From: Paramicrosporidium saccamoebae KSL3 | Lineage: Eukaryota > Fungi > Cryptomycota | Reading direction: 5' to 3' | Assembly: GCA_002794465.1 (NCBI GenBank) | Contig: MTSL01000200.1 | Coordinates: 11,063 to 43,062 of the forward strand | DNA: 32,000 bases | Part shown: in pieces, positions 1 to 29,311 of the stretch | Position numbering within the stretch: the stretch's first letter is position 1 | Layout of the letters: every line of letters starts with the position of its first letter | Notes under the pieces: model-generated | What the model was told of the DNA's origin: nothing | Databases searched by the model: none | The model's input: the letters and a program-made list of their open reading frames with translations, nothing else | Translations under genes and position numbers: made by a program

Positions 1-2142
1 GAATACGGGTGGCGTACTTGGCCTGCTGCCGAGTGCCAGTGTTAACGAGCGTGATGATAAATTCGAAAAAGTCGTCTCTCGGGGTAATCTTATCCAGGCA
101 GGCCGACGCAAATCTTGCATAGGAAGACAGAGTATCAATGGAGGATCCCGATTCACTAACAATAGCGTCCTGAAGGACACTGGCGTGACTAACACCGAGT
201 GCGGGAAACTCTGAAATAATGTCGGCAATCAGTTTTCTAGCACTGGAATAGAGTTCCTTGTCACTCAACTTTAGTACTGCAGTTAGAATCTCGTTGTTGA
301 TGGACAGCATACAAGCACGCCTAACAGTAAATGTGATCAGATATTCCTTCAGGCGAGCATCAGTCTTTTCCCAGTTTCGACTGGACAGAGTTTCCACCAA
401 GTCCTTTTGAGATTTAATAGACTTGTTCGGCTGAACCAGATGGCGAAATTGCTCCAAGAATAAAGTCTCCTTGGTCAAGGTTATAGGAAGGGCTTTAAGC
501 ATGCTTTGGGCGGGCAGAGGGAGACGATATTGATTCGAAAGATGCTGATTCAGAGCCTCAAGCCTCTGGTCCTCGGGATTGATTTCAACTAATTTCAGGT
601 ATGCGTCGAAATACTTGACAAAGATGGCCTTGTCATTTAGCCATCTCTTGAAAGCTTTGTGTGCTTCGTCACCCAGGACGCGATACATGCAAACCAGATA
701 TCGCGCATGCTCGGCCACATCGAGCTTGGGGAACATGGCGCCGTGCTCGATAAAGTATTCATAGAACAAACGGAGGTCTCTGTCATTGGTATAGATAAGC
801 TTAAATAGGGCATTAACGGCCACAGAAAAGCATTGATGATTAGGGTCCACTTTGAATTGGCGGTGAATAATTTCGCAAAGCAGATCAACAGCCACAAACT
901 GGACATCGGCGACCTTGTCGCGACATCGACCGCCCACCTCCTCGACAATATCCACTCCAAAAAGCGCAGGAGTACTGGTGTCTTCGAGACTCTTTTTGAG
1001 GAGCACTATGGATTTTTCTCTCACTTTGGCGTCAATGTCCAGCAATTTTTCCGCTAGGGCTTTCTGGAGTTGAATTTTGTATTGCAATCCTACTCCATGG
1101 AGCATGCTAACAGCCAACTTGAACCATTGAAGACGGACAGCAGCCACTTTGTCATTCATCTTGTTCAGCCACGACTGCCATAAATGGGGGTAAAGCTTGG
1201 GTACATCTTGATCGGGACAAGTAAGAAACGATGACAATGAGTTCATCGCCAGCAATCGCAGCTCTGCATCTGCTGTCTGTAGTTCTTCCTCCAGCTGCGC
1301 AACAACACTGGCAACCGCAGCAGGCGACACTCTTCCGACCTGAATAATCTGTAAATGAACCTGCCTCAGAGGCTCGATGCGTTTCTGCTGGTCGTTAGAA
1401 TCTCCCGTATATGCCAGTACGGCCTCGTTGAATAAAAGCCCCAGGGAGGGCTGTAACTTGTCAGAGCAAAGACGCACCAGGTCGGCCGCAAATATCCGAG
1501 TCTCTTCTCGAATATCGCCACACTTTTGCATGACACATCTGACGATATCGGAAGAGATTGTATCAGACTCGTCGATCAAGGTTTGAGCTATTTCCAAAAG
1601 ATACAATTTTGCCGTCCGTGTGACATTTGGAAGGGGCGCAAGATCAAAGATGAGGCCAAATAGTTGCTGCAAGAGCCGCTCCCTCGCCCCCATAGAGTCG
1701 TCGACATCGAGTAAAAGAACAATAGACTTGACTGTTGCCAAGCTCTCCACTAAATAAAATACATAGTTTTGATATGCATTCTTCTCGTCCGCCAGCAGTT
1801 TTAGCTGTTGTACAATCAAGGTGAAAACTTGCTATAATACAATCAAAACTAACTTTAGGCCGATACCGTCAGTTTGTCGGCGGGATATGGAGCATCTGGT
1901 GCAAAGACTCGGAGAATGTTGGCTATACAGCAGGATACTAGCAGCTTGATAGTCTTGTCGGCGCTATTAAGCAGCTCCGAATGCACCAGCCTCTCTGCTA
2001 CCGGCACCAGCTCATCTTGCAGCATTTCAAATTGGCTCTGGTCCACCTTGCAGAGGGAATCATGTAGTGTCTTGAGTTCTTCAACGACCTGGCTGATATT
2101 GCTACTGCGAACCCGTGTTGGTACAGTGAATCTGGCCGTCAT
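1..2142 (-). CDS. PDS5: Cohesin-associated HEAT-repeat protein Pds5, 5' part; runs off the window at position 1. Exons 2142-1867 and 1831-<1; intron 1866-1832 (35 nt)
   Basis: Manual translation gives LVSCCIANILRVFAPDAPY, then after the GT-AG intron FYLVESLATVKSIVLL, KMNDKVAAVRL, LLDIDAKVR, RCRDKVADV and GTRQQAKYA, all recognisable Pds5 blocks. The frame is open from 1831 to 1 with no stop, so it is absent from the ORF track. Confidence 0.93.
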
Positions 2143-2187
2143 TCTGTTAATCGCCCGCGTGAAATATTGAATTATTATTTAGTTTAT

Positions 2188-3423
2188 TTACGGAGCCTCT
2201 TGTGATGCGAGACGACGAAGACGGGCACTAGTTTCTTGCAGAGCCAAAAGACGATTTCTCAACTCTTCGGGAACGCCTTTGTCAATATCTGTCGTGAGTG
2301 GGGCGCTGAAGCTGGGAGCTGATGAATCCAGCTTTGGAGAATTGTCCATCAGCGAATCTACCCTAGATGGGTCTGCTCTCAGCAAATCGCTTCTTGGTGA
2401 ATAAGACTCGTCACTGGACAAGGTAAGAGGACTGACTATAATGTTGGAATCTGGAATCTGCTGCGCCTTGTTCAGCTTCAAGGCATCAAGAGAAGGAAGA
2501 GCTGTGGTTTGGCTTTTTAACTTTTGCTTTAACAGTTGAATCTTTTCATCTTTTCGTTGCAATTCGGCTCGGAATGACTCTTCTTGATCAATGATTGCCA
2601 TGGCCTTTTTGAGGGCCGTCTTGGCATTGCTGCGCTCCGTTTCAAGGGAGGCCAGCCTCAACTGCAATTCTTCGTCCATGGTAAGTTCGTTTTTCTTTGA
2701 CGCGCGACTTTTCACTTCTTCCTTAAGCCGGTAAACATCCTGCACCAAACAAGCCCGGTCGGTGGACATTTTCCGCATCTCAGTGCGAGATTCTTCCAGC
2801 CGGCGAGCCAGATCGTTGTTTAACGTCTGCTGTCTAGAGCGTTCCTCCAGAAGTTGCTGGATTTGGTGATCCTGCACGGGTGATGCAGTCTTTCCGGCCT
2901 TGTCAATCGTCTCTTTGGCAGAGTCCAATTCGGTCTTGAGTGATTTTACCTGTGCTTCTAAGCCTTTTATACGAACCTGGTGCTTGTTTGCTTCTTCGGC
3001 AATTAATCCGCGAAGTCTTTTACACTCATCCTCCAACTCGACTCGCTTTGCAGACAACTCTCCATATTCTTGCGTCTTTTTGGCGAGTTGGCCCTCAAAG
3101 GTCTGACATTTGGATCGTAACAGACTCATCTGACTGTAAATTTTTCCGTGCTCTCCCTCATATTTTTCCTTCTCATTCCTCAGCGCACGACACTCTTCCT
3201 CACGTGCTGCGAGTTGTTCCCGGATGTTCCGCAAGTCCGTCTTGGCCAGCGACAATCTGCCGAGCATGTCAGTGGGACTATCAGGTTGACGGGCGACAGG
3301 CTCAGCAACGAGGGGAGAAAGATTCCAACGGACCGATTTGGCGGGCGGCTTACGACGAGAACTTGCAATGGGGGTAGAACCATCGGTGGATTTGGCGCGC
3401 GCCGTTCCTTCAATGTACATCAA
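2188..3423 (-). CDS. Uncharacterised 411-aa coiled-coil protein with an N-terminal KSVRW (RVxF-type) motif
   Basis: Single-exon ORF with a long heptad-rich E/K/L/Q/R region and an S/P-rich linker; no family recognised. Confidence 0.8.
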   Translation of the reverse strand: MMYIEGTARAKSTDGSTPIASSRRKPPAKSVRWNLSPLVAEPVARQPDSPTDMLGRLSLAKTDLRNIREQLAAREEECRALRNEKEKYEGEHGKIYSQMSLLRSKCQTFEGQLAKKTQEYGELSAKRVELEDECKRLRGLIAEEANKHQVRIKGLEAQVKSLKTELDSAKETIDKAGKTASPVQDHQIQQLLEERSRQQTLNNDLARRLEESRTEMRKMSTDRACLVQDVYRLKEEVKSRASKKNELTMDEELQLRLASLETERSNAKTALKKAMAIIDQEESFRAELQRKDEKIQLLKQKLKSQTTALPSLDALKLNKAQQIPDSNIIVSPLTLSSDESYSPRSDLLRADPSRVDSLMDNSPKLDSSAPSFSAPLTTDIDKGVPEELRNRLLALQETSARLRRLASQEAP

Positions 3424-3513: not shown

Positions 3514-3593
3514 GGAGAGAGAGTGTGTTGGGGTTGATGAGCAAATTATTTCGTTGTGGCATGTAAATTACCACCCTCAACACACCGGCTTGG

Positions 3594-3646
3594 GGGATCG
3601 CTATCTGGATCAGACTCACTGTTAACAAATGGATACTGTTTAGCAG
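3594..3646 (+). repeat. Dispersed intergenic element, copy A (53 nt)
   Basis: 43/53 ungapped identity to the reverse complement of 20546-20598. Confidence 0.85.
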
Positions 3647-3647
3647 C

Positions 3648-3709
3648 GTGGATGTGATCTCACTAAAAATAGCATTGAATGCTGTGTGGATGTGATTCCG
3701 CTAAAAATA
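3648..3709. repeat. Direct repeat gtggatgtgat(ctca/tccg)ctaaaaata x2, period 38
   Basis: Copies at 3648-3671 and 3686-3709, separated by the palindrome agcatt-g-aatgct. Confidence 0.75.
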
Positions 3710-3763
3710 TCTTTTTAATGGTTACATTTAAGGATACCTTGCCGGGGAAGGACGCTTGGGCAC

Positions 3764-4965
3764 ATGGCTGAAGCTAACCGCGACGAGGCAGCCAGGTGCG
3801 AAGAACTTTCGCGTCGGTTCTTTGACCAGAAAGAATACACACTTGCTGCAAAGTATGCAGAAAAGTCGGTGCGACTTTACGAAACGGCACAATCGCTGGC
3901 TTGGCTATCTACAGTGAGGCAGACGTTGTCTGAACCAGCCCCACCTCGGCCGGCAGAGTCAAAGAGTCCTCAAGATTCCAAAAGTGCCTCACATGCACAG
4001 ACTCCTCAAAAGACCAAGCCACTCGATTCCAACACTTACACAAAGGAGCAGGCTGAGGGGGTAAAACGCTTTTTGCGAATCAATAAGGATGATTTTTATT
4101 CCGTCCTTGGCATTCCTCGAACTGCTGACGAGAACGAAATCAAGAAAGCTTATCGAAAGGTACAGCATTATTCTCCATATTCTCACAACCGTAGATGGCC
4201 TTGCAGTTTCATCCCGACAAGAACCATGCTCCCGGTGCGGATGAGGCGTTCAAGGTGGTCAGTCGTGCATTCTCATGTCTCAGTGACACGAGCAAAAAGA
4301 CCCAGTATGACCAATTTGGCTCTGAAGAACCTGCGGGCTTTAGTGGAGTCCGTTTCCGGAGGACTGCTCGCCCCATGAACTTTGAGGGCGAAATTTCCCC
4401 TGAAGAGCTCTTTAACATGTTTTTTAATGGTGGCTTTGAGGGAGCGCACTTTCAGTCTAGTGGATTTCCACCCATGTTTGTACACCATTTCCACTCTGGT
4501 GGTCAACGAGCGAGGAGGAGACAGAAACATCAGGAGCAACCCCTTTCGTGGATCGCCATTGCCCTGCAGATAATACCCGTGGCAATTGTTGGACTTTTTC
4601 TATTTTTGGGCAGCTTTCTGGGCACGTCGAATGCATCCACAGACACCTGGGATGCCTACTCTCGATACATTTCACTGAGTAGAACATCAAGTCACACCCA
4701 CCAGATGGCCACTGAAAAGAATGCCGTCCCATACTGGGCCACGACCGATTACCAGAAATATTTTTCGCGTGGAAATCAAAGGGAGCTGCGTGTGTATGAA
4801 GAGGCTGTTGAGCGCCAGTATCTGGTAGAAATACAGAAAAAGTGCCAAGAAGAAGAGCTGGATTTGCAAAAGAGAAAGGTAAATGCCAAAACCCGCGAAG
4901 AGCTGGAACGATTGCAAATGGAAAAATGTCCTTCCTGTGACAAGCTTCATTCATATTCTGTATAA
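3764..4965 (+). CDS. DNAJB12: ER-membrane J-domain protein of the DNAJB12/DNAJB14 (Hlj1-like) family, 388 aa. Exons 3764-4159 and 4195-4965; intron 4160-4194 (35 nt)
   Basis: N-terminus EANRDEAARC...AEKSVRLY; splicing restores the J-domain KKAYRK|MALQFHPDKN; G/F-rich region, one TM helix and a DUF1977-like luminal C-terminus follow. Confidence 0.92.
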
Positions 4966-5061
4966 ACGTTCATTGAGAACCCATTCTAGGTGTGGTTCAA
5001 GTGCAAATGCTAATGGTATTGTAAGCGCGAGTAGACTTGTTATTTGTGTTGAAAGTGCAAG

Positions 5062-5145
5062 AGTCATGGCTCAACCACAAAAGTCATGGCTCAACCACAA
5101 GTCATGGCCCGACCACCAAAGTCATTGCCCAGCCGCAAGATTCAT
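5062..5145. repeat. Degenerate 18-20-nt tandem repeat (gtcatggctcaaccacaa-like), about 4 copies
   Basis: Units read directly at 5063, 5083, 5101 and 5121. Confidence 0.8.
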
Positions 5146-5410
5146 GACCTGGTCATACGAGTCAACACACTTCTGATTCCAATAACAACCAATCTATCAA
5201 CAACACAGCCACGACTGGTGCCAAACTGAATTAAAGTGTTTGATCAAATGTCATATGAGATGGACTGACCAATAGAATCCGAGTATATAATTCCGGGGTT
5301 GGAGGGAATAAAAGTAGCAGTCTGACCCCCTGACTTGTCCGCCGCATCCGTCGTCGTTGTCCCGTTGAGCGCCCTTCTCTCCCGTTTAGAGTACGCCCAC
5401 CGGCCACCAC

Positions 5411-7662: not shown

Positions 7663-8586
7663 ATGCTTTCAGTGTTTCGTACTCCATTGTCAGTTAGGAT
7701 AGGTGGGAGGGGACTTTGCTTTCCTCGACTGTATCAATGCAATCGAGAGTATAGTACGGGGTATGGTGGCAAGAAGCCAATTTCCTTGTCAAATCTCCGT
7801 TCTTTGCCGGGTTCCACCCGCAAGGTGTCTTTTTCCGACTGTCCTCATATGATAGAAAAAACGGTGTCGTGGATTGGCATCGGGTGGCCGTACTAACGGA
7901 CGCGGAAACAATGGACAGAATGCACGTTCGGGCGGGCATTTGCCCCACGGCTTTGAGGGTGGTCAGACCCCCTTTCATCTGACTGTACCAAAGCGTGGCC
8001 ATCACAACCCGTATCAGCAACACCCCACCTTGGTCAATCTGGAGAGGGTGCAGCATCTAATTGACACTGGTCGCCTGGATGCAGAGAAGCCAATTACAAT
8101 GTTCCACCTGCGCAAGGCCGGAATCGATATCAAGGACGGTGTCAAAATCCTTGGCAGGGTATTACAAACCGATTACATTGATTGTAGGGAGCAACGTATT
8201 TTCAGAGTAAAGTGACTCTTCAGGCAACAATGTTCAGTCAATGTGCCATTGAACGGATCGAAGCATTGGGCGGCGTTGCGGCCAGTGTCTTTCATGATCG
8301 AAAAGGCCTACTGCAACTTCTCCGTCCCTCCACCTCCCGGGTGCATCCCTCGCTTCCACAGCCTCTCATTATGCCTCCCATGAATTACAAACAGCGACTC
8401 GAGTTTTCCGGCTGGGAACGACGTGGCTATCTCCATCCCACGGTGAGAGCGCGATTAGGCCTAGTGGACCCAACCTTTGAGGAGCGCTACTTGATGGTGG
8501 AGCCGGTGCAGCCACTAAATAAGCCAGACATTCAGCTCAGGAGGATTCCGACCGAACTTCGCGAGGAAGGAGTATTGCCGGCATAA
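7663..8586 (+). CDS. MRPL15: Mitochondrial ribosomal protein uL15m, 287 aa. Exons 7663-7824, 7856-8158, 8188-8586; introns of 31 and 29 nt
   Basis: Spliced product contains LSNLRSLPGSTRK|KKRCRGLASGGRTNGRGNNGQNARSG, GFEGGQTPF..VPKRG, VNLERVQHLIDTGRLD, GVKILGR|GA and AIERIEALGG, preceded by an R/S-rich presequence. The yeast orthologue is named MRPL10. Confidence 0.92.
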
Positions 8587-9117: not shown

Positions 9118-9156
9118 CTAGACAGGTCCAAGTTGTGGGACTATTAGCAATCTGTT

Positions 9157-9191
9157 GGGATAGATGGGATAGATGGCATAGATGAATAGAT
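9157..9191. repeat. 9-nt tandem repeat (gggatagat)x2, ggcatagat, gaatagat
   Basis: Read directly from the sequence. Confidence 0.75.
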
Positions 9192-9302: not shown

Positions 9303-11767
9303 ATGGAGGTCAGCAAGCCACTAGAGGTCACACATGCCAGCGTGGGGGCGGGAGGCCGCAAATCTGGACAGGCCAGCAGCATCTTTTCGCTGTCATTAAG
9401 CAGTACCGGTCGTCTGGCCACGTCCGGTCTGGACTGCACTGTGCGAATCTGGTCGTCCGAGCTGCAGCTACTTTCCATTCTGTCCCGTCACACTGGCGCA
9501 GTGCTCTGCGCACGTTGGTCGCCAAACGGAGAACTGTTGGCCACGGCATCAGATGATTCCATTGTGTTGGTCTGGCAACTCTCACAGTAACCCTCTCATG
9601 TGATGCATGAATATTGTAGAAACTCTTATGGAAGTTTTGAGGCCGAGTGTAAGGAGCATTATACGGTGGTACACCGATTGACGGGACACGAGTCTGACGT
9701 CAATGGAGTAGAATGGTCCTCGGATGGACGCTATTTGGCGTCCTGTGGACTAGATGGACGTGTGTTGGTATGGGATGTGCAGAACAGCTTTAATTTACTG
9801 CGTCGGATTGAGACAGAGCCTCGACGTCCCTTGAAAGGATTGGTGTGGGACCCATTGGGACAATTTCTTGCCACGCAATCCAATGATGGCACTTTGTACG
9901 TGTGGAGACTGCAGGATTGGAAGCTGGAGACACTGATAAGTTCTCCATACACAGAAGGACCGGTGGAGAGTCTGACTTACTTTTCCCGACCGGCATGGTC
10001 ACCTGATGGACGAGTGCTCTGTCTGCCTGATGCACTGAACGAAAGCGATACAGTGGCATTGTTGGTAGAACGTGATGATTGGCGCTGTGAACAAAGTTTG
10101 GTGGGTCATGCGGGAGCAGTACAGACGGCACGATTCAGTCCACGTTTGTATCGGACGACGGAAGACAATCAATTGGTCGTAGCATTGGGTGCCCAAGACG
10201 GCGTCGTGTCATTATGGGGCAGTGGAGGAGAGCGACCATTGGCGGTGCTGACGGGATTATTTGATCATGCGGTAATGGATCTGGCTTGGAATGCAGATGG
10301 ACGTTGTCTGTATGCGGCCAGCTATGATGGAACCGTGGCAATGATCAAAATGGAGACGAGCGTAGTAGGCACAGTTGTAGACGTTCAAGAACAAGACGAA
10401 TTGTTGGGAAAGCTATGTCAGGTGCAAAAATCAGCAGTACTCGCCCTTCCCACTAGTTTGGCTCAGATTGCTCTACAGGATCGTCTGGACTCTATCATGA
10501 CACAACGCAAGCCCTTAAACCCCGACAGTACGGCGAATCTTGATGGTACGGCGAGTACTGGTAATCTGGCGACTCCTGGTAACACGGCGAATCTCTCCAA
10601 TACCATGAATCTAGCCAATTGCAGCAATTCCTCTGCCCTTCAAGCGGGATTAGTTACGGCCCCCGCCTCCACGGATGCTATCACATCTGTGCCGGCTCTG
10701 GCTACCCCTCAAAGGGAAAGTCGATTAAAGAATGGAAAGAGACGGATCACTCCGCAGTTGCTGCAGTCTGCCAATCCGACGCCATCCACTGAATCGTATA
10801 CAGTGGTGGTAGGAAAGGCGGCGCGTAAGAGCTGGCTTCGAGTGGCAACACCAAAGACATTGGTTGTCGGCTCTATCGAAGTGACCAACAACACTGGCAG
10901 TGGCAACAATTGCCGAATCGTTAGATTGCAGGACGGACGGGTTTTGTGGGAGGAGCGATATGATTCGCTAGTGACAGCAGCAGTAGTGACGGGAACAGAT
11001 GTACTGATTGCTGCGCTCAATACGAATCGCATTGTGGTGCTGTCGCCGGCGGGCCGGAGATTGTTGCCTCCGTTACTGCTCTCGGCTCCAGTGACGCGAC
11101 TCTTGTCCTGTGAGGATGTTTGCACTGCTCTCCTTGACAATGGTCTCTTTTACGTTTGGTACGGACCACAATGTATTATAATATTTGTAGGCGGATGGCT
11201 GGATCGCTGTTGAATTGCATTGTGCAAGATGAATTACCTCCACAGGGATTGTCTTCAGAATTGGTCTCTTTGGAGCTGCGCTGTCGCGACAACGAGATAA
11301 CTCTTGATTTTGGCTTTCCCTCTAATCGGCTAGTTTATTCGGCAAGCCAGCGCGTCTTTTTTGAATGCGACGGCACTGATCTCCCTGACACTCTCATTGA
11401 CGCAATTTGGGGTGATCCCGCCGTTGATCCGGCCCTCATTGCACGGCTTCTCAATCAGGTTGATAGCGCCGATCTGAAGGCGAAATCGTTGGCCCAAATG
11501 GAGGCACAAATTGCCGCATGTCGCATGGTTGGTGACTTTGATCGACTTGTGGCATGGCTGGCCGCCTATGTGCAGCGACTTGCCCTGGAGGAGCGGGTGG
11601 GGAAGCTACAAGAGCTATTGGAAGATTTGCCCACTCTGGGCGTTAATACCTCCAATGTCCGACAAATGATTTCGTCCTTCCTAGCCACCAGCCCATCTGC
11701 CCTACTACGGCATCTTGCTGATAACACTATTACTAGCACCGCCAGCCACAACAGTAATATTATTTAA
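9303..11767 (+). CDS. HIR1: Histone chaperone HIRA/Hir1, 799 aa. Exons 9303-9586, 9620-11158, 11191-11767; introns of 33 and 32 nt
   Basis: WD40 blocks (HTGAVLCARWSPNG..LATASDD, HRLTGHESDV, KGLVWDPLGQFLATQSND, FSRPAWSPDG), the Asf1-binding B-motif QRESRLKNGKRRITPQLL, and a C-terminal HIRA region. Confidence 0.93.
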
Positions 11768-12195
11768 TTCTGGCTGGAGAAACGTGTATAATCGTTTACA
11801 TTTATAAAGCAAATTAATGTTGTGACGTAGAAGACTGATTAGTTGGGTATTTGAGGATAGTTCCCTAGTTTGGAGAGGAGATAGTCAGAACAATCGATGA
11901 AGGATAATGTTATTTGTGAGACTATAAATGGGTCATTGGACTGACTGAATAAATTCTCTTCTCGTCCCATCTCGTCTCTTTCCGCCTGACAAAGTCCGTG
12001 GTATTATCCCCACTACGCGACAATGTGATCCCTAGTATGAGATTTTCAGTATAAATCCTTGGTCCGTAGATGTGCGATCTTACCCAGACGCTTACTGCGC
12101 ATGAAAACTATGGTGTAACGTGTTTATACAGAAAAGACTATTATCCCACGCACGTATTATTATCTCTACGTGCGCGTTACTTTCATCTTCGCGCG

Positions 12196-17380: not shown

Positions 17381-19315
17381 ATGAAGGTGCCGCTGCTTCT
17401 CACCGTCCCTTTCGTTTTTGCGTCCGTATATAATCCTGTAAGACCCCTTCTCCCGGCAGAGAGTGACAGCAGCGTGGACACTGAACCGTTAATATCTCCG
17501 AATACAGAGTCGGGAAAGAATGCTGAAAATTTTGACGACTTGCTTGGGAGCGAAGGCGGGCTGGACTTGAAAAAGCTGGATCTAGCACTTGGGATTGCCA
17601 TGTCAGGCGTCGTAATGGCAGATGCCTCAGGCATAATGAGAAGAAGCGCAATTTTGGACAAGGATCAGCTCCCATTAATCAAGGAAGCGCTAGAGATGGG
17701 CTATGGCAACTATCTGGAGTGCATGTTGAATGTCGAGCTTGCCTGGTGGCATACCGAGGAGGAACGCCACTTGTTCTTGGCCCAGATCTACAAAACACCA
17801 TACTACAAAAGAGACTTGTGGAATGCCCATCGTCCCCAATTGAATTGGAAAAGGTACATGGACGCAGCAATCATGGCGGACAATGTCGTCTTTACTTTAT
17901 CTCGTCCCAAGACTTTTGAAGCTACTCTTAAGAGCCCTGCAGCAATCGCAAAATTTATCAAATATGATTCTGCCAATATGGTGAGATGCTATGTCAGCGA
18001 TCTCAACGTCTTTGCTACCAAGATGCGGGATTTAGCCATCGCTGGCTCCGTTAAGATTCTACGTCTGCTGGTGGAGCAAGACATTGAGTTGGATATGAAG
18101 AACATTACCCTGGAGGATGCGTGTCATGATGTAAGAGTCTTGCGCTTAATGTGCGAAAGCGGATACAAGGTTACTGTGACTGATGAAAGGCTCGATTTAT
18201 TTATGGAACAAGGCATGCTGGCACACCTTGAACTCTTCCATCACCTTAAACCCAAGAATCTTCCCACTGCAGAAGGAGTTGCAAGGGCAGCCAAAGCAGG
18301 CCATCTGGAAGCCGTAAAATGGGTAGTGGGTAAATCTCGAAAACGGCTTCCCTCAAATTCTGTCGACGGAGCCATCGCCAAAAATGGCCATCTAGCCATG
18401 CTCCAATGGCTTTTTGAGCAAGATCAAGGGCGGAGGATGCACACTATGGTGCTACTAGAGGCCATTGCCAAAGGGCATTCAGCTATCTTGGACTGGGCTT
18501 ATGGCATCGATCCAAATTTTTTGCAACGCATTGGAACGATTGATCGGATCTTTGTCGACAAGGCTTGTATTTCCGGAAAAATCGAGGGTCTAAGGTGGCT
18601 ACATAGAATGAATGTTAAAGTATTTCCAAGCAAACTCGGGTTGGCTCTAGCTACGTATAAAGGTCGCTTGGATGTGCTCCAATGGGTCATCACCATCAAG
18701 CCCAGCGTCTTCCCTAATGTCAGAGACCTTAATGCGGCTGCTAGTGAAGGCCATTTGGACCTGTTAAAATGGGTCCATTCCAAACAGCCCACGCTGATTC
18801 CCAATGCTGAGGGCGCAAATAAGGCAGCAAAGGGTGATCACGTCCCAGTCCTCGAGTGGTTGGCCTCGAAGGGGGTGTTTCCCAACGCAGTAGGTCTTAA
18901 CAAGTGTGTCGGATCTGGCAGCCTTACGGCCGTGCACTGGATAACGCAAGAGCAGCCAACATTAAACCCATCTCTCTACTCCATCCTCAAGGCTGTGAAA
19001 GCTGGTCATTTACAGGTCATTAAGCACATTCACAGAACCAAACCTAGATTGCTGAATTGTTTGGAATTCCGATTGGCCGCAGAAACCAATGGTTGGGAAG
19101 GAATAGTTGCTTTCCTAAAGACAAATGTGCCGAATCCCGAAAATGAAACAATTGCCGAGATTCTTCCTCCAAAGAGCTGGAGAGCGATGGATATTCCGAT
19201 AGTGAATCTTCGGGCACCATATCCACATCCGACTACGGCTCGTGGTCGCCATGGTCGCCATAAATCGTCCTTTACAGGAGGCTGTCCATTTTCGAGCCGG
19301 CATAATTCAGGTTGA
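17381..19315 (+). CDS. Predicted secreted 644-aa protein with 9-10 ankyrin-like 29-aa repeats
   Basis: Signal-peptide-like MKVPLLLTVPFVFAS; repeats of the form AAxxGHLxxLxW (AAKAGHLEAVKW, AKNGHLAMLQW, AASEGHLDLLKW, AVKAGHLQVIKH); intronless. Confidence 0.85.
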   Translation: MKVPLLLTVPFVFASVYNPVRPLLPAESDSSVDTEPLISPNTESGKNAENFDDLLGSEGGLDLKKLDLALGIAMSGVVMADASGIMRRSAILDKDQLPLIKEALEMGYGNYLECMLNVELAWWHTEEERHLFLAQIYKTPYYKRDLWNAHRPQLNWKRYMDAAIMADNVVFTLSRPKTFEATLKSPAAIAKFIKYDSANMVRCYVSDLNVFATKMRDLAIAGSVKILRLLVEQDIELDMKNITLEDACHDVRVLRLMCESGYKVTVTDERLDLFMEQGMLAHLELFHHLKPKNLPTAEGVARAAKAGHLEAVKWVVGKSRKRLPSNSVDGAIAKNGHLAMLQWLFEQDQGRRMHTMVLLEAIAKGHSAILDWAYGIDPNFLQRIGTIDRIFVDKACISGKIEGLRWLHRMNVKVFPSKLGLALATYKGRLDVLQWVITIKPSVFPNVRDLNAAASEGHLDLLKWVHSKQPTLIPNAEGANKAAKGDHVPVLEWLASKGVFPNAVGLNKCVGSGSLTAVHWITQEQPTLNPSLYSILKAVKAGHLQVIKHIHRTKPRLLNCLEFRLAAETNGWEGIVAFLKTNVPNPENETIAEILPPKSWRAMDIPIVNLRAPYPHPTTARGRHGRHKSSFTGGCPFSSRHNSG

Positions 19316-19549
19316 ATGCTTTATAGTCGCATCGTAATAAAAGTACGCATTTGGAAAATAAGAGCGAGAAGCTGCGGGAGGGTATATTGACGGATCAAGT
19401 CATTGAAAGGGATCGTAATTACATTGCAGTTAACATGGCCGCCATCATGGCAACTGAGGGTAAGAAACTACAAGAGTGTATCGATGAATTGAGCCCCCAG
19501 AAGAGATTACTACGTTGTAACTAGCACAGCTGTCATTATGAATGTTTCA

Positions 19550-20481
19550 TCATCGAATTCGTTTACTGAATTTGGCAAATGCATATGCTAACGAGTTGAC
19601 TGGGCCGGCCGTCATCACACCCTTTAGGGCCTGCAGAGTCGCTGGCCGTCGTACAATCGATGCTATCGATCGGTCCATAATAGTTGGGAGATGGGGGTGC
19701 TGGGAGAGTTGGACAAAGTCTCCATGGGAATACATTTGTCGCTGTAGATTTATGGGTAACTTGCAAATTTGATTCAGTCTGCTGATCGGGTCCTCATCCT
19801 ATGCATTAGTCCCACCATGCGTCTACTTGATTATAATAGTCGCCACTCTGAACTGTTTCAGCATCTAATGTCAGGAGCTTGGAGTATATTTCTGCGAGCT
19901 CGTCATATTGTCCGTCGAGGATCCGGCCGACCTTGTGTGGGTCCTCTGCCCAGCCCATCCTCGGATCACCGCAATATGAAATTCTCACCACACACTGTAA
20001 AAAGTCTCGGAGGCTGAACCGTCCGCCTAGTGACAATAAGGAAGCTCGCATTGCATGCATCCTATTTTCCGCAAGCAGATCGGTTGTGCCGTGGAAAATC
20101 CGGACCGACTTGTGCAGACGCCCCGCTACATAGAGTGTCGTCCAGTGTCGCATGTCGGCCTGAAATGAGGCAGTGGCAATGACGCCGTATTTGATGCGTT
20201 GACCACCGACCACGACAGACGGCACATAGTACAGACCAGCCGCACTATACTGCAAAAAGCCGTCTAGAGAGGAAGGATGGTGATAATGGGTGGGATGGCG
20301 CTGTCGATTTTCATAATGCCAGGCCAATGGGTCTGCCACGACAAAGATAAAGTCCAGCATCGAGTTCTATCAATCAGAATTGCTGCAAAAATACAGATGC
20401 ATCGTAGCCAGCTTGCGGCACGGCGACGGAGCCATAGGCACATGCAAACTCTATGGGAGGAAATTCTCCAAGAAGGCTCAT
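19550..20481 (-). CDS. TAM41: Mitochondrial phosphatidate cytidylyltransferase Tam41, 291 aa. Exons 20481-20395, 20366-19827, 19798-19550; two 28-nt introns
   Basis: FACAYGS..PQ, MLDFIFVV.DP..WH.EN...HP.HY, IKYGVI, HWTTLYVAGRLHK, ISYCGDPRM..AEDPHKV..I, LPINLQ and ALKGVMTAG. Confidence 0.94.
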
Positions 20482-20545
20482 TAAAGAAAACACTTAATAT
20501 TTGTGAGATGGTATATTGACAGATCAAACCTTTAATCCAAAGGGT

Positions 20546-20598
20546 CTGTTAAACAGCATCCACTTATTACTGGTGAGTCCGACCCAGATAGCGGTCCC
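20546..20598 (-). repeat. Dispersed intergenic element, copy B (53 nt)
   Basis: Reverse complement gggaccgctatctgggtcggactcaccagtaataagtggatgctgtttaacag matches 3594-3646 at 43/53. Confidence 0.85.
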
Positions 20599-20774
20599 AT
20601 GGTCCAGTTTGATTGCATTAAGAATGGCCACCTACAAAGAAGCCATTTACTTTAATAAAAGTCAAGTTCACCCATCAACAGGGTTCTTATTGGCACCTCA
20701 CAGGATGGTGTGTTGATAAACCAAGGCTCCCTTCATAAAGGGTCTCTACATAAATATTACAATAGTAGTAACTT

Positions 20775-21542: not shown

Positions 21543-23738
21543 ATGCGATTTTCAAAATGCGCCTGGTTCAGCACTGTCAAACGGTGCATCTCCCCTCAAT
21601 ATATTCTGGAAATGGAGGGAAAGTGGAAAGGGCGCTGGTCCATGCGTCCCGAGGAATACCATGTGAACGCTACCGCTGCAAAGAAATACATTTTGGCAAT
21701 GTTCCCCTATCCATCAGGAAACTTGCATATCGGCCATGTCCGCGTCTATGCCATCAGTGACGCACTCTCCCGCTATCAGCGGCTTCTCGGCGCCCCTGTT
21801 CTCCACCCCATCGGCTGGGATGCCTTTGGCCTGCCCGCCGAAAATGCTGCGATCGAAAGAGCCATCCCGCCGGCGGAATGGACCCGAGCCAATATTAAAC
21901 AGATGCGCTCCCAGCTAGACTCGCTGTCGTTACGTTTTGACTGGGATCATGCGGTAACGACCTGTGAGCCGGAATACTACAGATGGACCCAATGGCTATT
22001 TTTGCGACTAATGAAGAAAGGGCTTGTGGAGCGACGCGAAGCAGAGGTCAATTGGGATCCGGTAGATGAGACAGTGTTGGCAAACGAGCAGGTGGACTCT
22101 AACGGATGCTCCTGGAGGTCTGGTGCAAAGGTGGAGAAGCGAATGCTAAGGCAGTGGTTTTTAAAGATTACAAAGTATCAGGATGATCTTTTAAAGGGTT
22201 TGGAAGGATTGGAATGGCCGCGGGCGGTAAAGGACATGCAGAGGCATTGGATTGTTGCGTCTGGTGAGTATCGTTTCACAATCGAGGGAGGAAGTTTAGT
22301 GGTTGCGCTGAAAAGATCTGATGATTGGCGTCTAGCTGAATCGATCCTAATCGATCCAAAGCACCCGAACAGAGCAATTGGCTCCATAATCAATCCTGCT
22401 ACCTCACAGCCAATCCCAGTGGTAGTATCTACGGAGAGTTTAAAAGATCCGATGGTTGCACAAGTGGTGTTGGGTAAGAAGCAGGCCAAGTTGAATCCTC
22501 TGCCTGCCCAGCCTCCACCCGAGTTTGTGATTACAGAATACAGATTGAGGGATTGGCTAATTTCTCGCCAAAGATATTGGGGTACACCCATTCCCATCAT
22601 TCACTGTGCCACCTGTGGAGTAACGATGCATTTGGTATGCTAATTTCTAGACGGTTCCGGTTCCCGAAGAACAATTGCCAGTGATTTTGCCCCAGGATGT
22701 TCCGATGCTTGGTAAGGGGTCTCCTCTTGCCCAGCACCCTTCCTGGAGCGCACCCTGTCCTTCGTAAGATGTACTGTTCGAAGCTAGACTTTTTTGTAGT
22801 TGTGGCAAGGATGCAAGGAGAGAAACTGATACAATGGATACATTTATGGACTCTAGTTGGTATTTTGCCCGACACGTTGATCCCCAAAACGACAAGATGC
22901 CCGCCGATCCATCAAAATTACGACAGTGGCTACCTGTGGATGCCTACATTGGCGGCATTGAGCATGCAATTCTACATTTGCTATATGCGCGGTTTATGAC
23001 CAGGTTTATGGCCGAGGAGCTTGGATTTGAGCAAGCGGAACCGTTTGCCGGCCTGATTACACAGGGTCTGGTAGAGGGCAAAACATATCAATGTCCTGCC
23101 ACTGGTCGCTATCTCAAGCCTGAAGAATTGCGGCAAGAGGGAAAAAAAGTCATAATTACAGAAACAGGTGCTTTGCCGCTGGAAACGTGGGACAAGATGA
23201 GCAAATCAAAGTACAATGGGGTTGATCCAGTTGGACTAGTTTCACAATACGGTGCAGACGTACTCCGTCTGTGTGTAATGTTCAAGGCACCTCCTGAAGT
23301 GGCACTGCAGTGGAACACGAGGGACATTGCGGGTCCCCAGAGATGGATCTTGAGACTGCTGACTCTGGCGGGGAAGATAATGGACCGTTCTGATAATGCA
23401 GCGATCGGCTGCCCTCGTTCCGAGGCATCGCTTGTTGCCTCAGTCAACAAAGCCATCTGCAATGTACACTCCAACTGCGACTTAATTGTTAGATGGAATA
23501 TGCATATGATCCAGCCCGACACCGGCTCAATCTGGCGGTATCCAATTTGATGACCTTGTCAAACGACATTGAAAAGTCGCTTGATGCCTCACCAACCACT
23601 TTAAGAACGGCAATGAAAGCTTTAGCCGTAATGCTCCATCCCCTTGCACCCCACACGAGTGCAGAGCTGCGCGAAACACTGCAATGCACTAGCCTCCTAA
23701 AATGGCCCACCCCGATTAAAGAAATAATAATAGAATAA
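21543..23738 (+). CDS. NAM2: Mitochondrial (bacterial-type) leucyl-tRNA synthetase, 699 aa. Exons 21543-22619, 22651-22763, 22800-23463, 23493-23738; introns of 31, 36 and 29 nt
   Basis: MFPYPSGNLHIGH, GWDAFGLPAENAAI, WDPVDETVLANEQVD, YRLRDWLISRQRYWG, ETDTMDTFMDSSWYF, YIGGIEHAILHLLYARF and KMSKSKYNGVDP, with an R-rich presequence. Confidence 0.96.
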
Positions 23739-23763
23739 CTTTTTGGATTAGCTCGACAATGTG

Positions 23764-24468
23764 ATGAGACGAATACTTGCTGGACTAAGTGATTTCTTGG
23801 CATGGCATCGGCTTGTCCCATTGTTTATCAAGGATCGCGACCTTCTTGTACTATTCCTGCGATTTCTGTTCCTGAACGGAGTGCTGTACCTCGGAACTGT
23901 CTCCTTGCTGCTTTCGCTTCTCACCCGACATCCAACAAACTTTTTCCGACTTGTCGTCCTGCTACTATGGTTTCTGCCAATTTATCCCCTCTGTTTTATG
24001 CTCAATGAGCGGCTGTACACGTTGCTTGCTGCACATCTGCACCCGTCCGACCATCATGCGCGTCCCGCAGAACAGCTGTACCGCGCCATCTTCCTTGGTA
24101 TCCATCTGGCGCTCATATACGGCCTGCCAGCCATCTCGTCGAAATTGTATGTACTGACAGTGCCTATGGGAGCGTGGGTATATGCGCTGTATGCCTGCGA
24201 GTATTATTGGCATGCCACCTTTTCCGTGCGGGTGGCTCGAATTGAAGACAATGCCTTGTATTTTTTGGGATTCGGACTGATGCCCGCACTGGCAATGGCG
24301 TTGTTTAGACCCTTGGTGGGACTAGGAGTTTCATCGTTGGCATTTGGGATGGCAGTGCTGATGGCGTTCTTTGTACCGATCCGTCCGTCAAACGGCCTCC
24401 GCGTTCCCATCTTCAAGGCTACGGGTCTTATAGCTGACACGGCCATCCGTCTGTTCTTCCGCAAGTAA
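23764..24468 (+). CDS. EI24: EI24 (etoposide-induced 2.4) family membrane protein, 234 aa
   Basis: FLFLNGVLYLG, LWFLPIY, YALYACEYYW and RIEDNALYFLGFG; multi-pass TM profile. Confidence 0.8.
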   Translation: MRRILAGLSDFLAWHRLVPLFIKDRDLLVLFLRFLFLNGVLYLGTVSLLLSLLTRHPTNFFRLVVLLLWFLPIYPLCFMLNERLYTLLAAHLHPSDHHARPAEQLYRAIFLGIHLALIYGLPAISSKLYVLTVPMGAWVYALYACEYYWHATFSVRVARIEDNALYFLGFGLMPALAMALFRPLVGLGVSSLAFGMAVLMAFFVPIRPSNGLRVPIFKATGLIADTAIRLFFRK

Positions 24469-24506: not shown

Positions 24507-24530
24507 GGTCTGTTAAATAGTGTCCACTTA
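24507..24530 (-). repeat. Dispersed intergenic element, partial copy C (24 nt)
   Basis: ggtctgttaaatagtgtccactta vs 20543-20566 ggtctgttaaacagcatccactta, 21/24. Confidence 0.65.
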
Positions 24531-24631
24531 GGATTAGCCGTCCTGAGATCCTTGATCTCCCAATATACTGTTTCACACAAAGTTACCCTATGAACCATAA
24601 TATAGAGAATAGATAGCATTGCACACTTTAT

Positions 24632-25687
24632 TTACGTTCTAGCACAGCGACTCTGAGGACCAATATTGGCATCAGTGAGGAATGACCACAGGACATTTCG
24701 CCACGACATGTGTGCCTTTAGCGGTTGGTAAAATTCTGGCGCCAGCTTGGTGATCATGGGGAGGAGACGGGCAGGCACGGCGGGAAAGTCGTGGTGTTCG
24801 TTATGGAAGCCAATATTTAAATAAAGTGCATTGGCCCAGCCATAGTAATTGTATGTCTCCTGACCACTGGCAAAGGTGTAATGTTCCTGGAGGAAGTGGG
24901 CAGCAACGGGATGGAACGTGTAACCGTAGAGGAAACAGATTAGCGTATAAGTCCAACCACGCACTCCAAAAAAGTACAGCGTCACAATATTGCAAAAGAT
25001 GGTAAAGACAGTGTTGACAGACTCCCAATAGGTCACTGTCTTGCCACGGACGATGGCACGGACGGCATACATGGCGGGATAAAGGGTAAGCCAGATGAGT
25101 TTGTGCCAAAAGGTTCCTCGGATCAGCTTCAGCTCCCAATCCAACGGCATGTCGGGATCCTTGGCAGCGGAGCCTTGGTAGACGTGGTGGTCGCTGTGGT
25201 ATCGGCGGAAGGACATGGCAATGGGTACGGGAGTTCCGACATTGCTCAGCAGCGCCAACAGTTTGTTTGGCAGCGATTCCTTGGTGACCAAACTGTGGAC
25301 ACATTCGTGTACACACACGGCCATCAGGTCCACAATACTTGCCCCAATGACACATGCCACTGCTGTCATGGCCAGAAACCAGGAAACGCCCTCTGTCCGT
25401 CCGAAAAAGTAGGCCAGCAGCGTGTTGCATCCAACACCAAACACAATAATCCACGCCACCATTGGGTCATGTGAATATAATCGTCGGATTAGTGGATGTC
25501 GCTCCAGGATGGTTTTGCGTCGTCGTGTATGCGGTTGCGTTTGCCAATCTCGTGCGAAATCAGTGTCGCGCCATGCCAGCGACCGCTCCCATCCTCCCAA
25601 GTGAAGCGGCATAGCTTCATCCTTAGGGATCGTCGGTTTGGTGACCTCGGATACTTTGGTCTTTTCCACACTACACGGAGTAGGCAT
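24632..25687 (-). CDS. DES1: Sphingolipid delta-4 desaturase (dihydroceramide desaturase), 351 aa
   Basis: DF..DWQTQPHTRRRKTILERHP; His boxes HECVH, YHSDHH and HNEHHDFP; HPVAAHFLQEH and ETYNYYG. Confidence 0.96.
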   Translation of the reverse strand: MPTPCSVEKTKVSEVTKPTIPKDEAMPLHLGGWERSLAWRDTDFARDWQTQPHTRRRKTILERHPLIRRLYSHDPMVAWIIVFGVGCNTLLAYFFGRTEGVSWFLAMTAVACVIGASIVDLMAVCVHECVHSLVTKESLPNKLLALLSNVGTPVPIAMSFRRYHSDHHVYQGSAAKDPDMPLDWELKLIRGTFWHKLIWLTLYPAMYAVRAIVRGKTVTYWESVNTVFTIFCNIVTLYFFGVRGWTYTLICFLYGYTFHPVAAHFLQEHYTFASGQETYNYYGWANALYLNIGFHNEHHDFPAVPARLLPMITKLAPEFYQPLKAHMSWRNVLWSFLTDANIGPQSRCART

Positions 25688-26632: not shown

Positions 26633-26752
26633 TTCATCCCTCCCACACTGACCATATGACCCCCTTCATATCTCTACACTAACCATATAATCTCTTTCAT
26701 CCCTCCTAAACTAGCCATATAATCTCTTTCATCTTTCCCACGCTAACCAACA
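26633..26752. repeat. 31-32-nt minisatellite, about 3.8 copies (consensus ttcatccctccyacactaaccatataatctct)
   Basis: ttcat anchors at 26633, 26665, 26696 and 26728. Confidence 0.85.
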
Positions 26753-27625: not shown

Positions 27626-29102
27626 TTAAATTTCTGGTTGGAGGAGCGAGGAGTGGATGGCACAGAGGGCACGCAAAGAATTTTCAGAGGAAATGACACA
27701 GGAAATGTTAATTTCAGAGGCGCCTTGCGAGATCATTTCAATGTTGACACCGGTGGCTGCGAGGGTGGTAAACATTTGTGCCGAGATGCCAATCCTGCGA
27801 CGCATTGCCTGGCCGATGAGACTGAGAATGGATAGGCCGTCGGACCTAGAGACGATCCCAATCTTTTGCAAGTCTCTTATGAGTGCATCACTTAGATGAT
27901 CAGCGGGGATGGCCATGGAAAGATTGACTCTGCTAGTAGAAATCAAATCCACAATAACGCCATGTTGATTTAAAAGAGTAAATATTTCGGCAAAGAATAG
28001 TTGTGGTGCCGTAACTAGTCGCGAGGTAATGTTCAGGATGGAGATTCCCTCTTTGAGAGTTACTGCGACAGCAGATTCGTCTGTACAACATTTGCTATGA
28101 CTCGCTTCATTGTGGATCATGGTGCCTTGTGAGGTTGGATCGCGTACATTTCTTATTTGGATTGAAACTCCCGATTGCGTGACCTGTCGCATTGTAAATG
28201 GGTTTATCACTTCAGCCCCATAGTATGTAAGCTCAGCTGCCTCTTCTGGTGAAATTTCATGCAACAATTTAGCATCCTCCACTTTGGTGGGATCCGCACT
28301 ATATATGCCGGCAACTTCTTTCCAAATCGTCAATTTCTTAGCTTGTAGACCTTTGGCGAGGAGGGCACTAGTAAGGTCAGTGTAACCGCGGCCAATGCAT
28401 TTGAGCAGCGAGCCGGGCACTGGGCCGATGAATCCACTTACCACGGCAGTGAGGTTGTTTGGTAAATCTGTAATGCTCTTGGCCAAAACACGGGACACAA
28501 TGTCATACAATTCCTGTCCCAAGTACAATGGTGCCTTGCTAACATGCTCCATTAACAGATCCTTTCCATCAACAGCAATGGATTCGATTCCCTACATACC
28601 TTAGTTCACTACTAAATCGTAACTTGATCCTCCAAATAGGTTGCGAGGAACATGGCCGAAAGACTCTCACCAACGCTGACAATGACATCCCGTGTTCTTG
28701 GAGAGACTTCATGTAATACCATAGCCGCATTGATGAATTCCTTAAGCCTCTTTACCACTCTTTGCAGCGTCGCATGAAACTCTGCTGCCGCATCACTACT
28801 CAATGAGTTTGTTGCCATGTTAGCATGATATTCGTATAACTCCTTCATCTCGGCTTGAATCTCGTCGGGACGACTCTCCTCGATACACGCCACCATGCGC
28901 AGCAATCTGGCCGTGGTACCGACAGTCTTGTTGCCATCACTCATTGCCGACACGACTACAACCGGTGCACTTTCATCCATTTTTCCATCCCTAGACCATC
29001 ACTTCACATTCATGGAGAAAACCGGACAATCTTGGCAATGTTTTGCAAGTTGCAAAAATTTCCAACACTGGTGCCACCAAATTTGTGTACCTGGTAGCGC
29101 AT
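27626..29102 (-). CDS. HOM3: Aspartokinase, 470 aa. Exons 29102-29023, 28990-28624, 28591-27626; two 32-nt introns
   Basis: VHKFGGTSVG, VVVVSAMS...GTT.RLL, SVGESLS, IGRGYTDLT, IWKEVAGIYSADP, EEAAELTYYGAEVI.PFTM, and C-terminal ACT domains (NIEMISQGASEINISCVI). Confidence 0.96.
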
Positions 29103-29183: not shown

Positions 29184-29311
29184 TGAAGAGTAGGAAATCC
29201 ACATGAAGAGTCGGTAGTCCACATAAAGAGTAGGAAATCCCCACGAGTAGGGAATCCACACGAGGAGGGAATCCACATGAGTAGGGAATCTATCTGGAGA
29301 GTAGGAAATCC
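29184..29311. repeat. 17-20-nt minisatellite, 7 copies, core GAGTAGGRAATCC, overlapping the ASH2 stop codon
   Basis: Units at 29184, 29204, 29224, 29244, 29261, 29278 and 29295. Confidence 0.88.

Follow-up and report, generated by a model that had tools for sequence, protein, structure and literature searches.

A non-coding sequence of ~53 bases is dispersed through the intergenic DNA of Paramicrosporidium saccamoebae KSL3 (accession number MTSL00000000; PMC5701793), and its repetition is real. On the sequence evidence, the feature is most likely a modestly interesting relic of a lineage-specific short interspersed repeat, with any function being a candidate only. A probability of about 0.45 is given to the reading that the copies are decayed fragments of such a repeat, in which the core is the best-kept terminal segment. 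The window, meaning the whole 32000-nt stretch of DNA that was analysed, represents bases 11063-43062 of contig MTSL01000200.1 in assembly GCA_002794465.1, and the desaturase and PABP proteins encoded in it are on record on that contig. Together with an adjoining upstream piece (L022), the window covers 36.5 kb of the 7.3-Mb genome, in which the gene space is 76% and repeats, mostly simple, make up only 0.53% (PMC5701793).

Three copies, A, B and C, had been described in the earlier note, and the three sequences were found to read as quoted there at their coordinates (Table 1). The ungapped match of A and B at 43/53 positions was recovered by self-BLASTN as a single HSP (3594-3646 versus 20598-20546; 81.1% over 53 nt, E = 1e-6), which was the sole dispersed similarity in the window at that stringency, and the match of C to B at 21/24 positions over 24507-24530 was reproduced. 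The core said to be shared by all three, YAARTGGAYRCTRTTTARCAG, has exactly three matches in the window, at 3626 (+), 20546 (-) and 24510 (-), where 0.04 are expected from shuffles. For a pattern built from A and B alone, ~4e-4 chance matches would be expected, by our own estimate, at the two mismatches that C shows. As the core counts and the A and B pattern both far exceed chance, the similarity of A, B and C was accepted as real. The core holds a near-palindrome, CTGTT-T-AACAG, around which B aligns with C on both strands. Each of the two 34-nt tandem units listed next to copy A carries GTGGATGTGAT and the TATA-like CTAAAAATA, and the pair lies upstream of the DnaJ start.

Table 1. Coordinates in the window of the repeated element, its extensions and the associated module M2
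Feature	Position	Strand	Remarks
Copy A, diverged upstream continuation	3539..3593	+	~49% identical to B; transition-tolerant alignment
Copy A, 53-nt well-conserved block	3594..3646	+	Core is the last 21 nt, 3626-3646; 43/53 to B
Two 34-nt tandem units, 79% identical	3643-3676 and 3681-3714 (span 3643..3714)	+	Begin at the last bases of copy A
M2 alone, GTATATTGACGGATCAA	19382..19398	+	Convergent spacer between ankyrin-repeat ORF and Tam41; no recognisable core after M2
Segment just 3' of copy B	20500..20545	-	Contains M2 (20511-20527, + strand)
Copy B, 53-nt block	20546..20598	-	Core is 20546-20566; self-BLASTN and core match
Copy B, diverged upstream continuation	20599..20652	-	Homologous to A; transition-tolerant alignment
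Copy C, core only	24507..24530	-	21/24 to B
Sequence 5' of the C core	24531..24568	-	M2 at 24552-24568; perfect GAGATC-AAG-GATCTC hairpin/palindrome at 24545-24559; TAATCC

Copy A is in a divergent spacer, flanked by a 410-codon ORF, which the annotation takes for the N-terminus of PDS5, and by a gene encoding a DnaJ and DUF1977 protein. This is the gene that had been called DNAJB12, and the distance of 117 nt given from A to its ATG was reproduced. The spacer of copy B has the 3' end of a DUF2046 gene on one side and the start of Tam41 on the other, B being found about 64 nt before the TAM41 ATG as claimed, and copy C sits, also as claimed, between convergent 3' ends, which belong to a class I aminoacyl-tRNA synthetase gene and a sphingolipid delta-4 desaturase gene. 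With copies in divergent, tandem and convergent spacers and in both orientations, the view that the element is not simply a promoter motif was borne out; when the copies were assessed as a cis-regulatory promoter or terminator signal, they had no fixed position or orientation relative to genes and no copy at syntenic spacers. Spacers of 9-48 nt, which had been taken as the rule in this genome, are not the rule in the window, as 13 stretches of 60-316 nt have no open frame of at least 75 codons.

The element is larger and more mosaic than first described, with ~108 nt shared by A and B and a second module present in other spacers. A transition-tolerant local alignment extended the A/B homology to about 108 nt (A 3539-3646, B 20652-20546; z = 8.8 for the whole alignment), the identity being 81% over 53 nt and then ~49% over the 55 nt added upstream, where many of the differences are transitions. 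A fourth copy of the core, E (TAAGCGGATACTGCTTAGTAG), was detected by nhmmer (E = 0.019) 3 kb upstream of the window, at L022 1481-1501 (+), in a tandem spacer between an mRNA triphosphatase gene and a RING-finger gene, which brings the cores in the 36.5 kb to four. C and E retain the core alone. In all four copies the similarity stops sharply at YAG, and the flanks past YAG are unrelated. A metagenome scan for further copies of the core returned only 12 unrelated chance matches, and a scan of prokaryote genomes with the 5' block returned only two chance matches.

The second module, M2 (GTATATTGRNRGATCAA), matches at 19382 (+), 20511 (+) and 24552 (-), three occurrences where 0.06 are expected. 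In B and C it is separated from the core by 18-21 nt, though its orientation relative to the core is opposite in the two. The segment at 20500-20545 was found to be homologous to the spacer at ~19376-19420 (46-nt alignment, z = 3.2) and also, on the opposite strand, to the C locus through the centre of the palindrome. The spacers involved are divergent for A, tandem for B and E, and convergent for C and for M2 at 19382, with both orientations represented. A weaker M2-like site is present at about 5227-5262 (+).

A 236-nt element, R2, which is unrelated to A, B, C and E, was found at L022 1196-1431 (+) and, with internal deletions, at 11821-12022 (-) in the window. The R2 copies are ~90% identical, differing by 17 transitions and one transversion, end in TG..CA with an imperfect 10-bp inverted terminus (TGTCGCGTAG / CTACGTCACA), and are each flanked by their own 4-bp direct repeat (CCTT/CCTT and ACAT/ACAT). 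R2 therefore has the hallmarks of insertion (TG..CA ends, inverted terminus and flanking repeats) and looks like a solo LTR or MITE, indicating that relics of inserted mobile elements sit in the spacers of this contig. Several spacers additionally carry their own tandem arrays of 9-38-nt units (5058-5139, 9156-9184, 26633-26749 and 29184-29311), for example about 4-7 copies of GAGTAGGGAATCCACAC directly 3' of a SPRY gene, and a GTGGAT/ATCCAC motif is common to the spacer tandem arrays and the element.

Gene order is kept in three related genomes, represented by a 132 kb JGI contig (L013 and L018), Logan contigs (L014-L016) and a JGI contig (L017). Identity in protein is ~70% for L013 and L018, and the desaturase of L017 shows 92% protein and 87% DNA identity. 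No copy of the element was found at the sites equivalent to A, B and C in L013/L018 or L014, nor anywhere in the DNA of the relatives that was searched, and two relatives, for which 40.7 kb and 17.7 kb were available, had no dispersed repeats. The similarity between L017 and the window stops a few bases past the desaturase stop codon, and no copy is present in the 254 nt of unrelated 3' flank available from L017; a 48-nt stretch 5' of the gene is 92% identical. The desaturase/aminoacyl-tRNA synthetase spacer of L018, equivalent to that of C, contains two adjacent tRNA-Ala genes (AGC and CGC) at 11426-11578 (also L020 2165-2317). A rearrangement breakpoint was considered in connection with the ankyrin-repeat ORF, which has no homologue in the relatives, and was set aside as movement is not demonstrable.

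Examination of the neighbouring genes revealed several differences from the gene calls. The ankyrin-repeat ORF (17381-19315, +; 644 codons) was not called as a gene, and the syntenic relatives lack a homologue of it. For Tam41, only a 184-aa middle piece has been called, though homology spans 20490-19556 (listed as 19556-20482, -) with two tiny introns inside, and an ORF with a weak EI24 Pfam match (23761-24468, +) has been called as the C-terminus of the aminoacyl-tRNA synthetase. Two genes, at 2144-2191 (-) and 24626-24635 (-), end with CGTAAATAAA, in which the stop codon lies within GTAAAT and AATAAA, and the desaturase copy of this motif is conserved in L017. At 2144-2191, the recorded gene span and product length imply that a 48-nt GTAAAT..TTAACAG sequence was treated as an intron, fusing the 410-codon ORF to PDS5; in the relatives, the counterparts of this ORF and PDS5 are two genes, 130-299 nt apart. 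The 32-kb window contains no tRNA genes.

Eight clear introns were inferred from homologues, all in coding sequence and 28-35 nt long, with a GTA or GTG start and CTNAY 6-8 nt before a terminal TAG. They are located at 4161-4195, ~28589-28620 (-), 1832-1866 (-), 20368-20395 (-), ~19792-19819 (-), ~22623-22653, ~23467-23495 and ~7826-7856. Joining the HIRA gene frames that flank ~11180-11210 would need a ~20-nt intron or a frameshift.

The count of nine transitions among the ten differences between A and B, reported in the earlier note, is correct (one transversion), but it does not amount to a special excess, as the neutral transition fraction is ~0.78 (p ~0.3). This fraction is saturation-corrected and comes from our own Kimura two-parameter calculation; comparison of the desaturase gene with that of the 87%-identical relative gave 40 transitions and 17 transversions at four-fold degenerate sites. 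When A/B (9:1) and R2 (17:1) are pooled, 26/28 differences are transitions (p ~0.04). No CpA or CpG context preference was found among the transitions, and the eight variable sites of the core all differ by transitions only. Given the corrected neutral fraction, the 17:1 ratio in R2 and the absence of a context preference, the A/B transitions are attributed to mutation bias; as evidence of G-U pairing they do not count. A RIP-like or CpG-deamination signature was likewise rejected, there being no dinucleotide context preference and the neutral transition fraction being already so high.

Under the favoured reading, A, B, C and E would be decayed, partly rearranged pieces of a lineage-specific repeat in the intergenic DNA of P. 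saccamoebae, and the source of the repeat would most likely be a non-autonomous mobile element. The 21-27-nt core may be best kept because it was a terminal, protein-recognised segment that was held similar among source copies before insertion, and the present copies would be neutral relics with no host function. This reading is favoured as homologous fragments in any orientation are confined to spacers at four loci in 36.5 kb, as they have a common sharp YAG end with identity falling 5' of the core, and as collinear blocks with indels form a mosaic among spacers (M2 at 19382, 20511 and 24552). It is also favoured by the absence of the element from the same spacers in the relatives examined, by the A/B spectrum (9:1), which is like that of R2 (17:1) with both near the neutral bias, and by the flanking duplications of R2, which indicate that inserted repeats do occupy the same spacers.

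The MITE/SINE-like relic was the best-fitting of the three candidates that had been put forward, though terminal inverted repeats, target-site duplications and SINE features were not found. No terminal inverted repeats bracket the copies, the GGGAYCGC... and ...TTTARCAG ends not being complementary, and the only inverted match is internal to copy C (8/10, TGTGAAACAG versus TGTTAAATAG). Whether the unit is taken as 53 nt or as 108 nt, its flanks lack a direct repeat at the boundaries. On the reverse strand the copies start with (C)TG, which would suit a solo LTR, yet neither a CA end to match nor a duplication was found; R2, in contrast, has TG..CA ends, short inverted termini and a flanking duplication. 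No Pol III boxes, poly(A) or A-rich tail, or tRNA-like head are present in the copies, and no full-length master copy, transposase gene or reverse-transcriptase gene was seen. Curated families also contain no match to the element, in agreement with the remark in the earlier note that no known family was recognised. It is because inverted termini, target-site duplication, tail and master copy were not found for A, B, C and E that the mobile-element reading is held at about the value given above. The low figure of 0.53% repeats given for the genome likewise speaks against the mobile-element reading. The stronger conservation of the core could equally mean host selection, and the presence of B, C and the 19382 module within 5 kb also fits local patch duplication.

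In another reading, a sequence-specific factor would bind the 21-27-nt core, whose features are an oriented TAAGTGGA arm and the near-palindrome CTRYT-T-ARYAG; the predicted factor could be of a general regulatory/insulator type or an origin-recognition type able to act in any spacer and free of orientation. We regard this as unlikely, though in C and E conservation is far stronger in the core than around it, and A and B precede the TATA-like sequences of the DnaJ and Tam41 genes by 20-60 nt. Within the core, invariant triplets are spaced at 5 bp (TAA RY GGA YR CT RY TTA RY AG) and the eight variable sites differ by transitions only, but four sequences are too few to establish a contact pattern and such variation goes just marginally past the background bias. 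GTGGAT-type motifs are found in several spacers, which would also suit a bound site. Yet the core is absent at every syntenic spacer of the relatives, although L017 retains 92% identity over 48 nt 5' of its desaturase gene, and homology of 50-108 nt with collinear blocks far exceeds the length of a binding site. Patch duplication, in which pieces of spacer would have been copied nearby during repair or rearrangement and then drifted, with no mobile element involved, is distinctly unlikely in our estimate. The close placement of B, C and the 19382 module is in keeping with it, and B shares different segments with A, C and 19382 and, weakly, with spacers at 17.2 kb and 5.2 kb. Local gene content also differs from that of the relatives, the ankyrin-repeat ORF having no counterpart in L013/L018 or L014 and two tRNA-Ala genes occupying the C-equivalent site of L018. 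However, A and E are 17-23 kb away from B, and duplication of patches leaves unexplained why four copies have a common sharp YAG boundary and retain the same 21 nt.

An RNA gene or a conserved regulatory signal found no evidence in the tests applied. The suggestion that the copies form a small non-coding RNA gene family, each being its own transcription unit, was not upheld and is now very improbable. It is in keeping with their location in spacers of above-minimal length, with TATA-like sequences 25-40 nt from the core on one strand or the other, and with a small hairpin that A, B and C each have 25-30 nt 5' of the core, but the hairpin of A/B and that of C are built from non-homologous bases and the element is not conserved in the relatives. 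Rfam gave no match in the whole window at the gathering score; at relaxed E-values, three matches around copy A (E 1.9-9.9) were taken as chance and there were none elsewhere, leaving no Rfam assignment even at E up to 1-10. ARAGORN identified no tRNA or tRNA-like sequence. The folding energy of the 71-nt units was no better than that of shuffles on either strand (z -0.4 to +0.8), the same being true of whole spacers except one of six (z = -2.5), and the consensus fold of -4.6 kcal/mol includes a covariation term of -0.77 kcal/mol that comes from just three sequences, and even four are too few for covariation to be judged. The transitions match the background bias, as set out above. The TCTG-N3-CRGA stem is indeed kept in A and B, but these are only two sequences, and the transitions that were taken as G-U pairs are in line with the background.

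Other candidates were examined and rejected. A reverse-strand micro-exon, LLNS[IV]HL followed by GTGAGT, looked synonymous-biased in A, B and C, yet it has no start and in C a stop lies directly before the frame. Copy E breaks the frame (N to S, H to R and a stop), the variable sites are adjacent pairs every 4-5 nt and not every third base, and the peptide was not found in the relatives. An ordinary intron on either strand was discarded as the copies differ in length, 3' end (CAG versus TAG) and branch-site spacing and are not between coding exons. A tRNA relic, prompted by the tRNA-Ala genes in the C-equivalent spacer of the relative, and a U2 snRNA pseudogene (ATCGCT start, AAGTG..CTGTT) both aligned no better than shuffles. 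A UPRE-like CAGCGTG at the boundary of A, forkhead- or homeodomain-like submotifs and an alpha2-operator-like CATGTAAATTACC occur in one copy each, within chance.

The copies were also compared with the 'long introns' of microsporidia, which occur in unrelated genes with a common internal region, a G-U-tolerant stem-loop and a hyper-extended, U2-pairing branch site, and of which a 120-bp example is found in RPS23 of P. saccamoebae (Whelan et al. 2019; PMC6349667). An intron-like element of this kind, spliced from UTRs or a relic of such introns, would begin with GYAAAT, continue with a conserved internal block that holds a small hairpin and then with a stretch able to pair with the U2 region that recognises the branch site, and finish at YAG. 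The A/B homology does run from GCAAAT/GTAAAT to CAG over about 105-108 nt, and in C a GTAAAT precedes CAG by 129 nt. The AARYGGAYRCUGY stretch of copies A, B and E is able to pair with nt 33-44 of U2 (human sequence) over 12 uninterrupted Watson-Crick or G-U pairs, which only 4-12 of 2000 shuffles equal (p ~0.002-0.006 per copy). This stretch is the left half of the core (3628-3639, +; 20553-20564, -; L022 1483-1494, +) and is weakly significant per copy. Against these points, the eight homologue-supported introns described above are far shorter, with their own start and branch-site features, and are found within coding sequence. No adenosine is bulged in the stretch complementary to U2, and 14 U2-complementary runs of equal length were counted in 73 kb, many of them in coding DNA. 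Copy E has no co-oriented gene, the TATA-like boxes downstream of A and B argue that both are outside mRNAs, and the desaturase stop is the same in the 92%-identical relative. The intron-like reading is improbable, and it is a little more doubtful still that the copies are members or relics of a family related to the long introns that has spread to UTR or intergenic positions in a rozellomycotan.

If the repeat-relic reading is true, the finding is a minor one, namely that a compact genome with 0.53% repeats still holds short decayed repeats that standard finders miss, and the relics could serve as markers of earlier activity of mobile elements and of places where local rearrangement occurred. 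Should the copies instead be akin to the long introns or be factor-bound, they would offer a route to the origin of conserved intron-like or spacer elements in reduced genomes, and a true relation to the long introns would link the puzzling likeness of those introns in unrelated microsporidian genes to the propagation of an element.

Extended ARS consensus sequences of some yeasts and the sites of general regulatory factors are conserved across related species and are present genome-wide at functional spacing. The element is like them in its occurrence in any type of spacer, its independence of orientation and its partly palindromic core, and unlike them in its absence from the relatives examined and in homology that extends far beyond a binding site. 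Introners of fungi and algae are inside transcribed genes, are spliced and usually number from tens to thousands of copies. The likeness to introner-like elements is in the near-identical short elements at several loci with splice-site-like ends; of the element described here, four intergenic cores are seen in 36.5 kb. The microsporidian long introns of Poly-A and RPS23 genes (PMC6349667) resemble the element in described features, these being sequence common to unrelated loci, a length of about 76-150 nt, a YAG end, an internal block with a G-U-tolerant stem-loop and extensive potential for pairing with U2. Those introns are proven to be spliced, are near coding 5' ends and have a bulged branch adenosine, whereas the copies here are intergenic, have no bulged A and in one case have no host gene. 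Compared with MITE or solo-LTR relics of fungi and microsporidia, A, B, C and E differ in that no inverted termini, flanking duplication or full-length or autonomous partner was found. They are like such relics in being short, multi-copy and confined to spacers in either orientation, with one sharp well-kept end, internal decay, indels and a lineage-specific distribution, and R2 on the same contig displays the TG..CA ends and 4-bp duplications.
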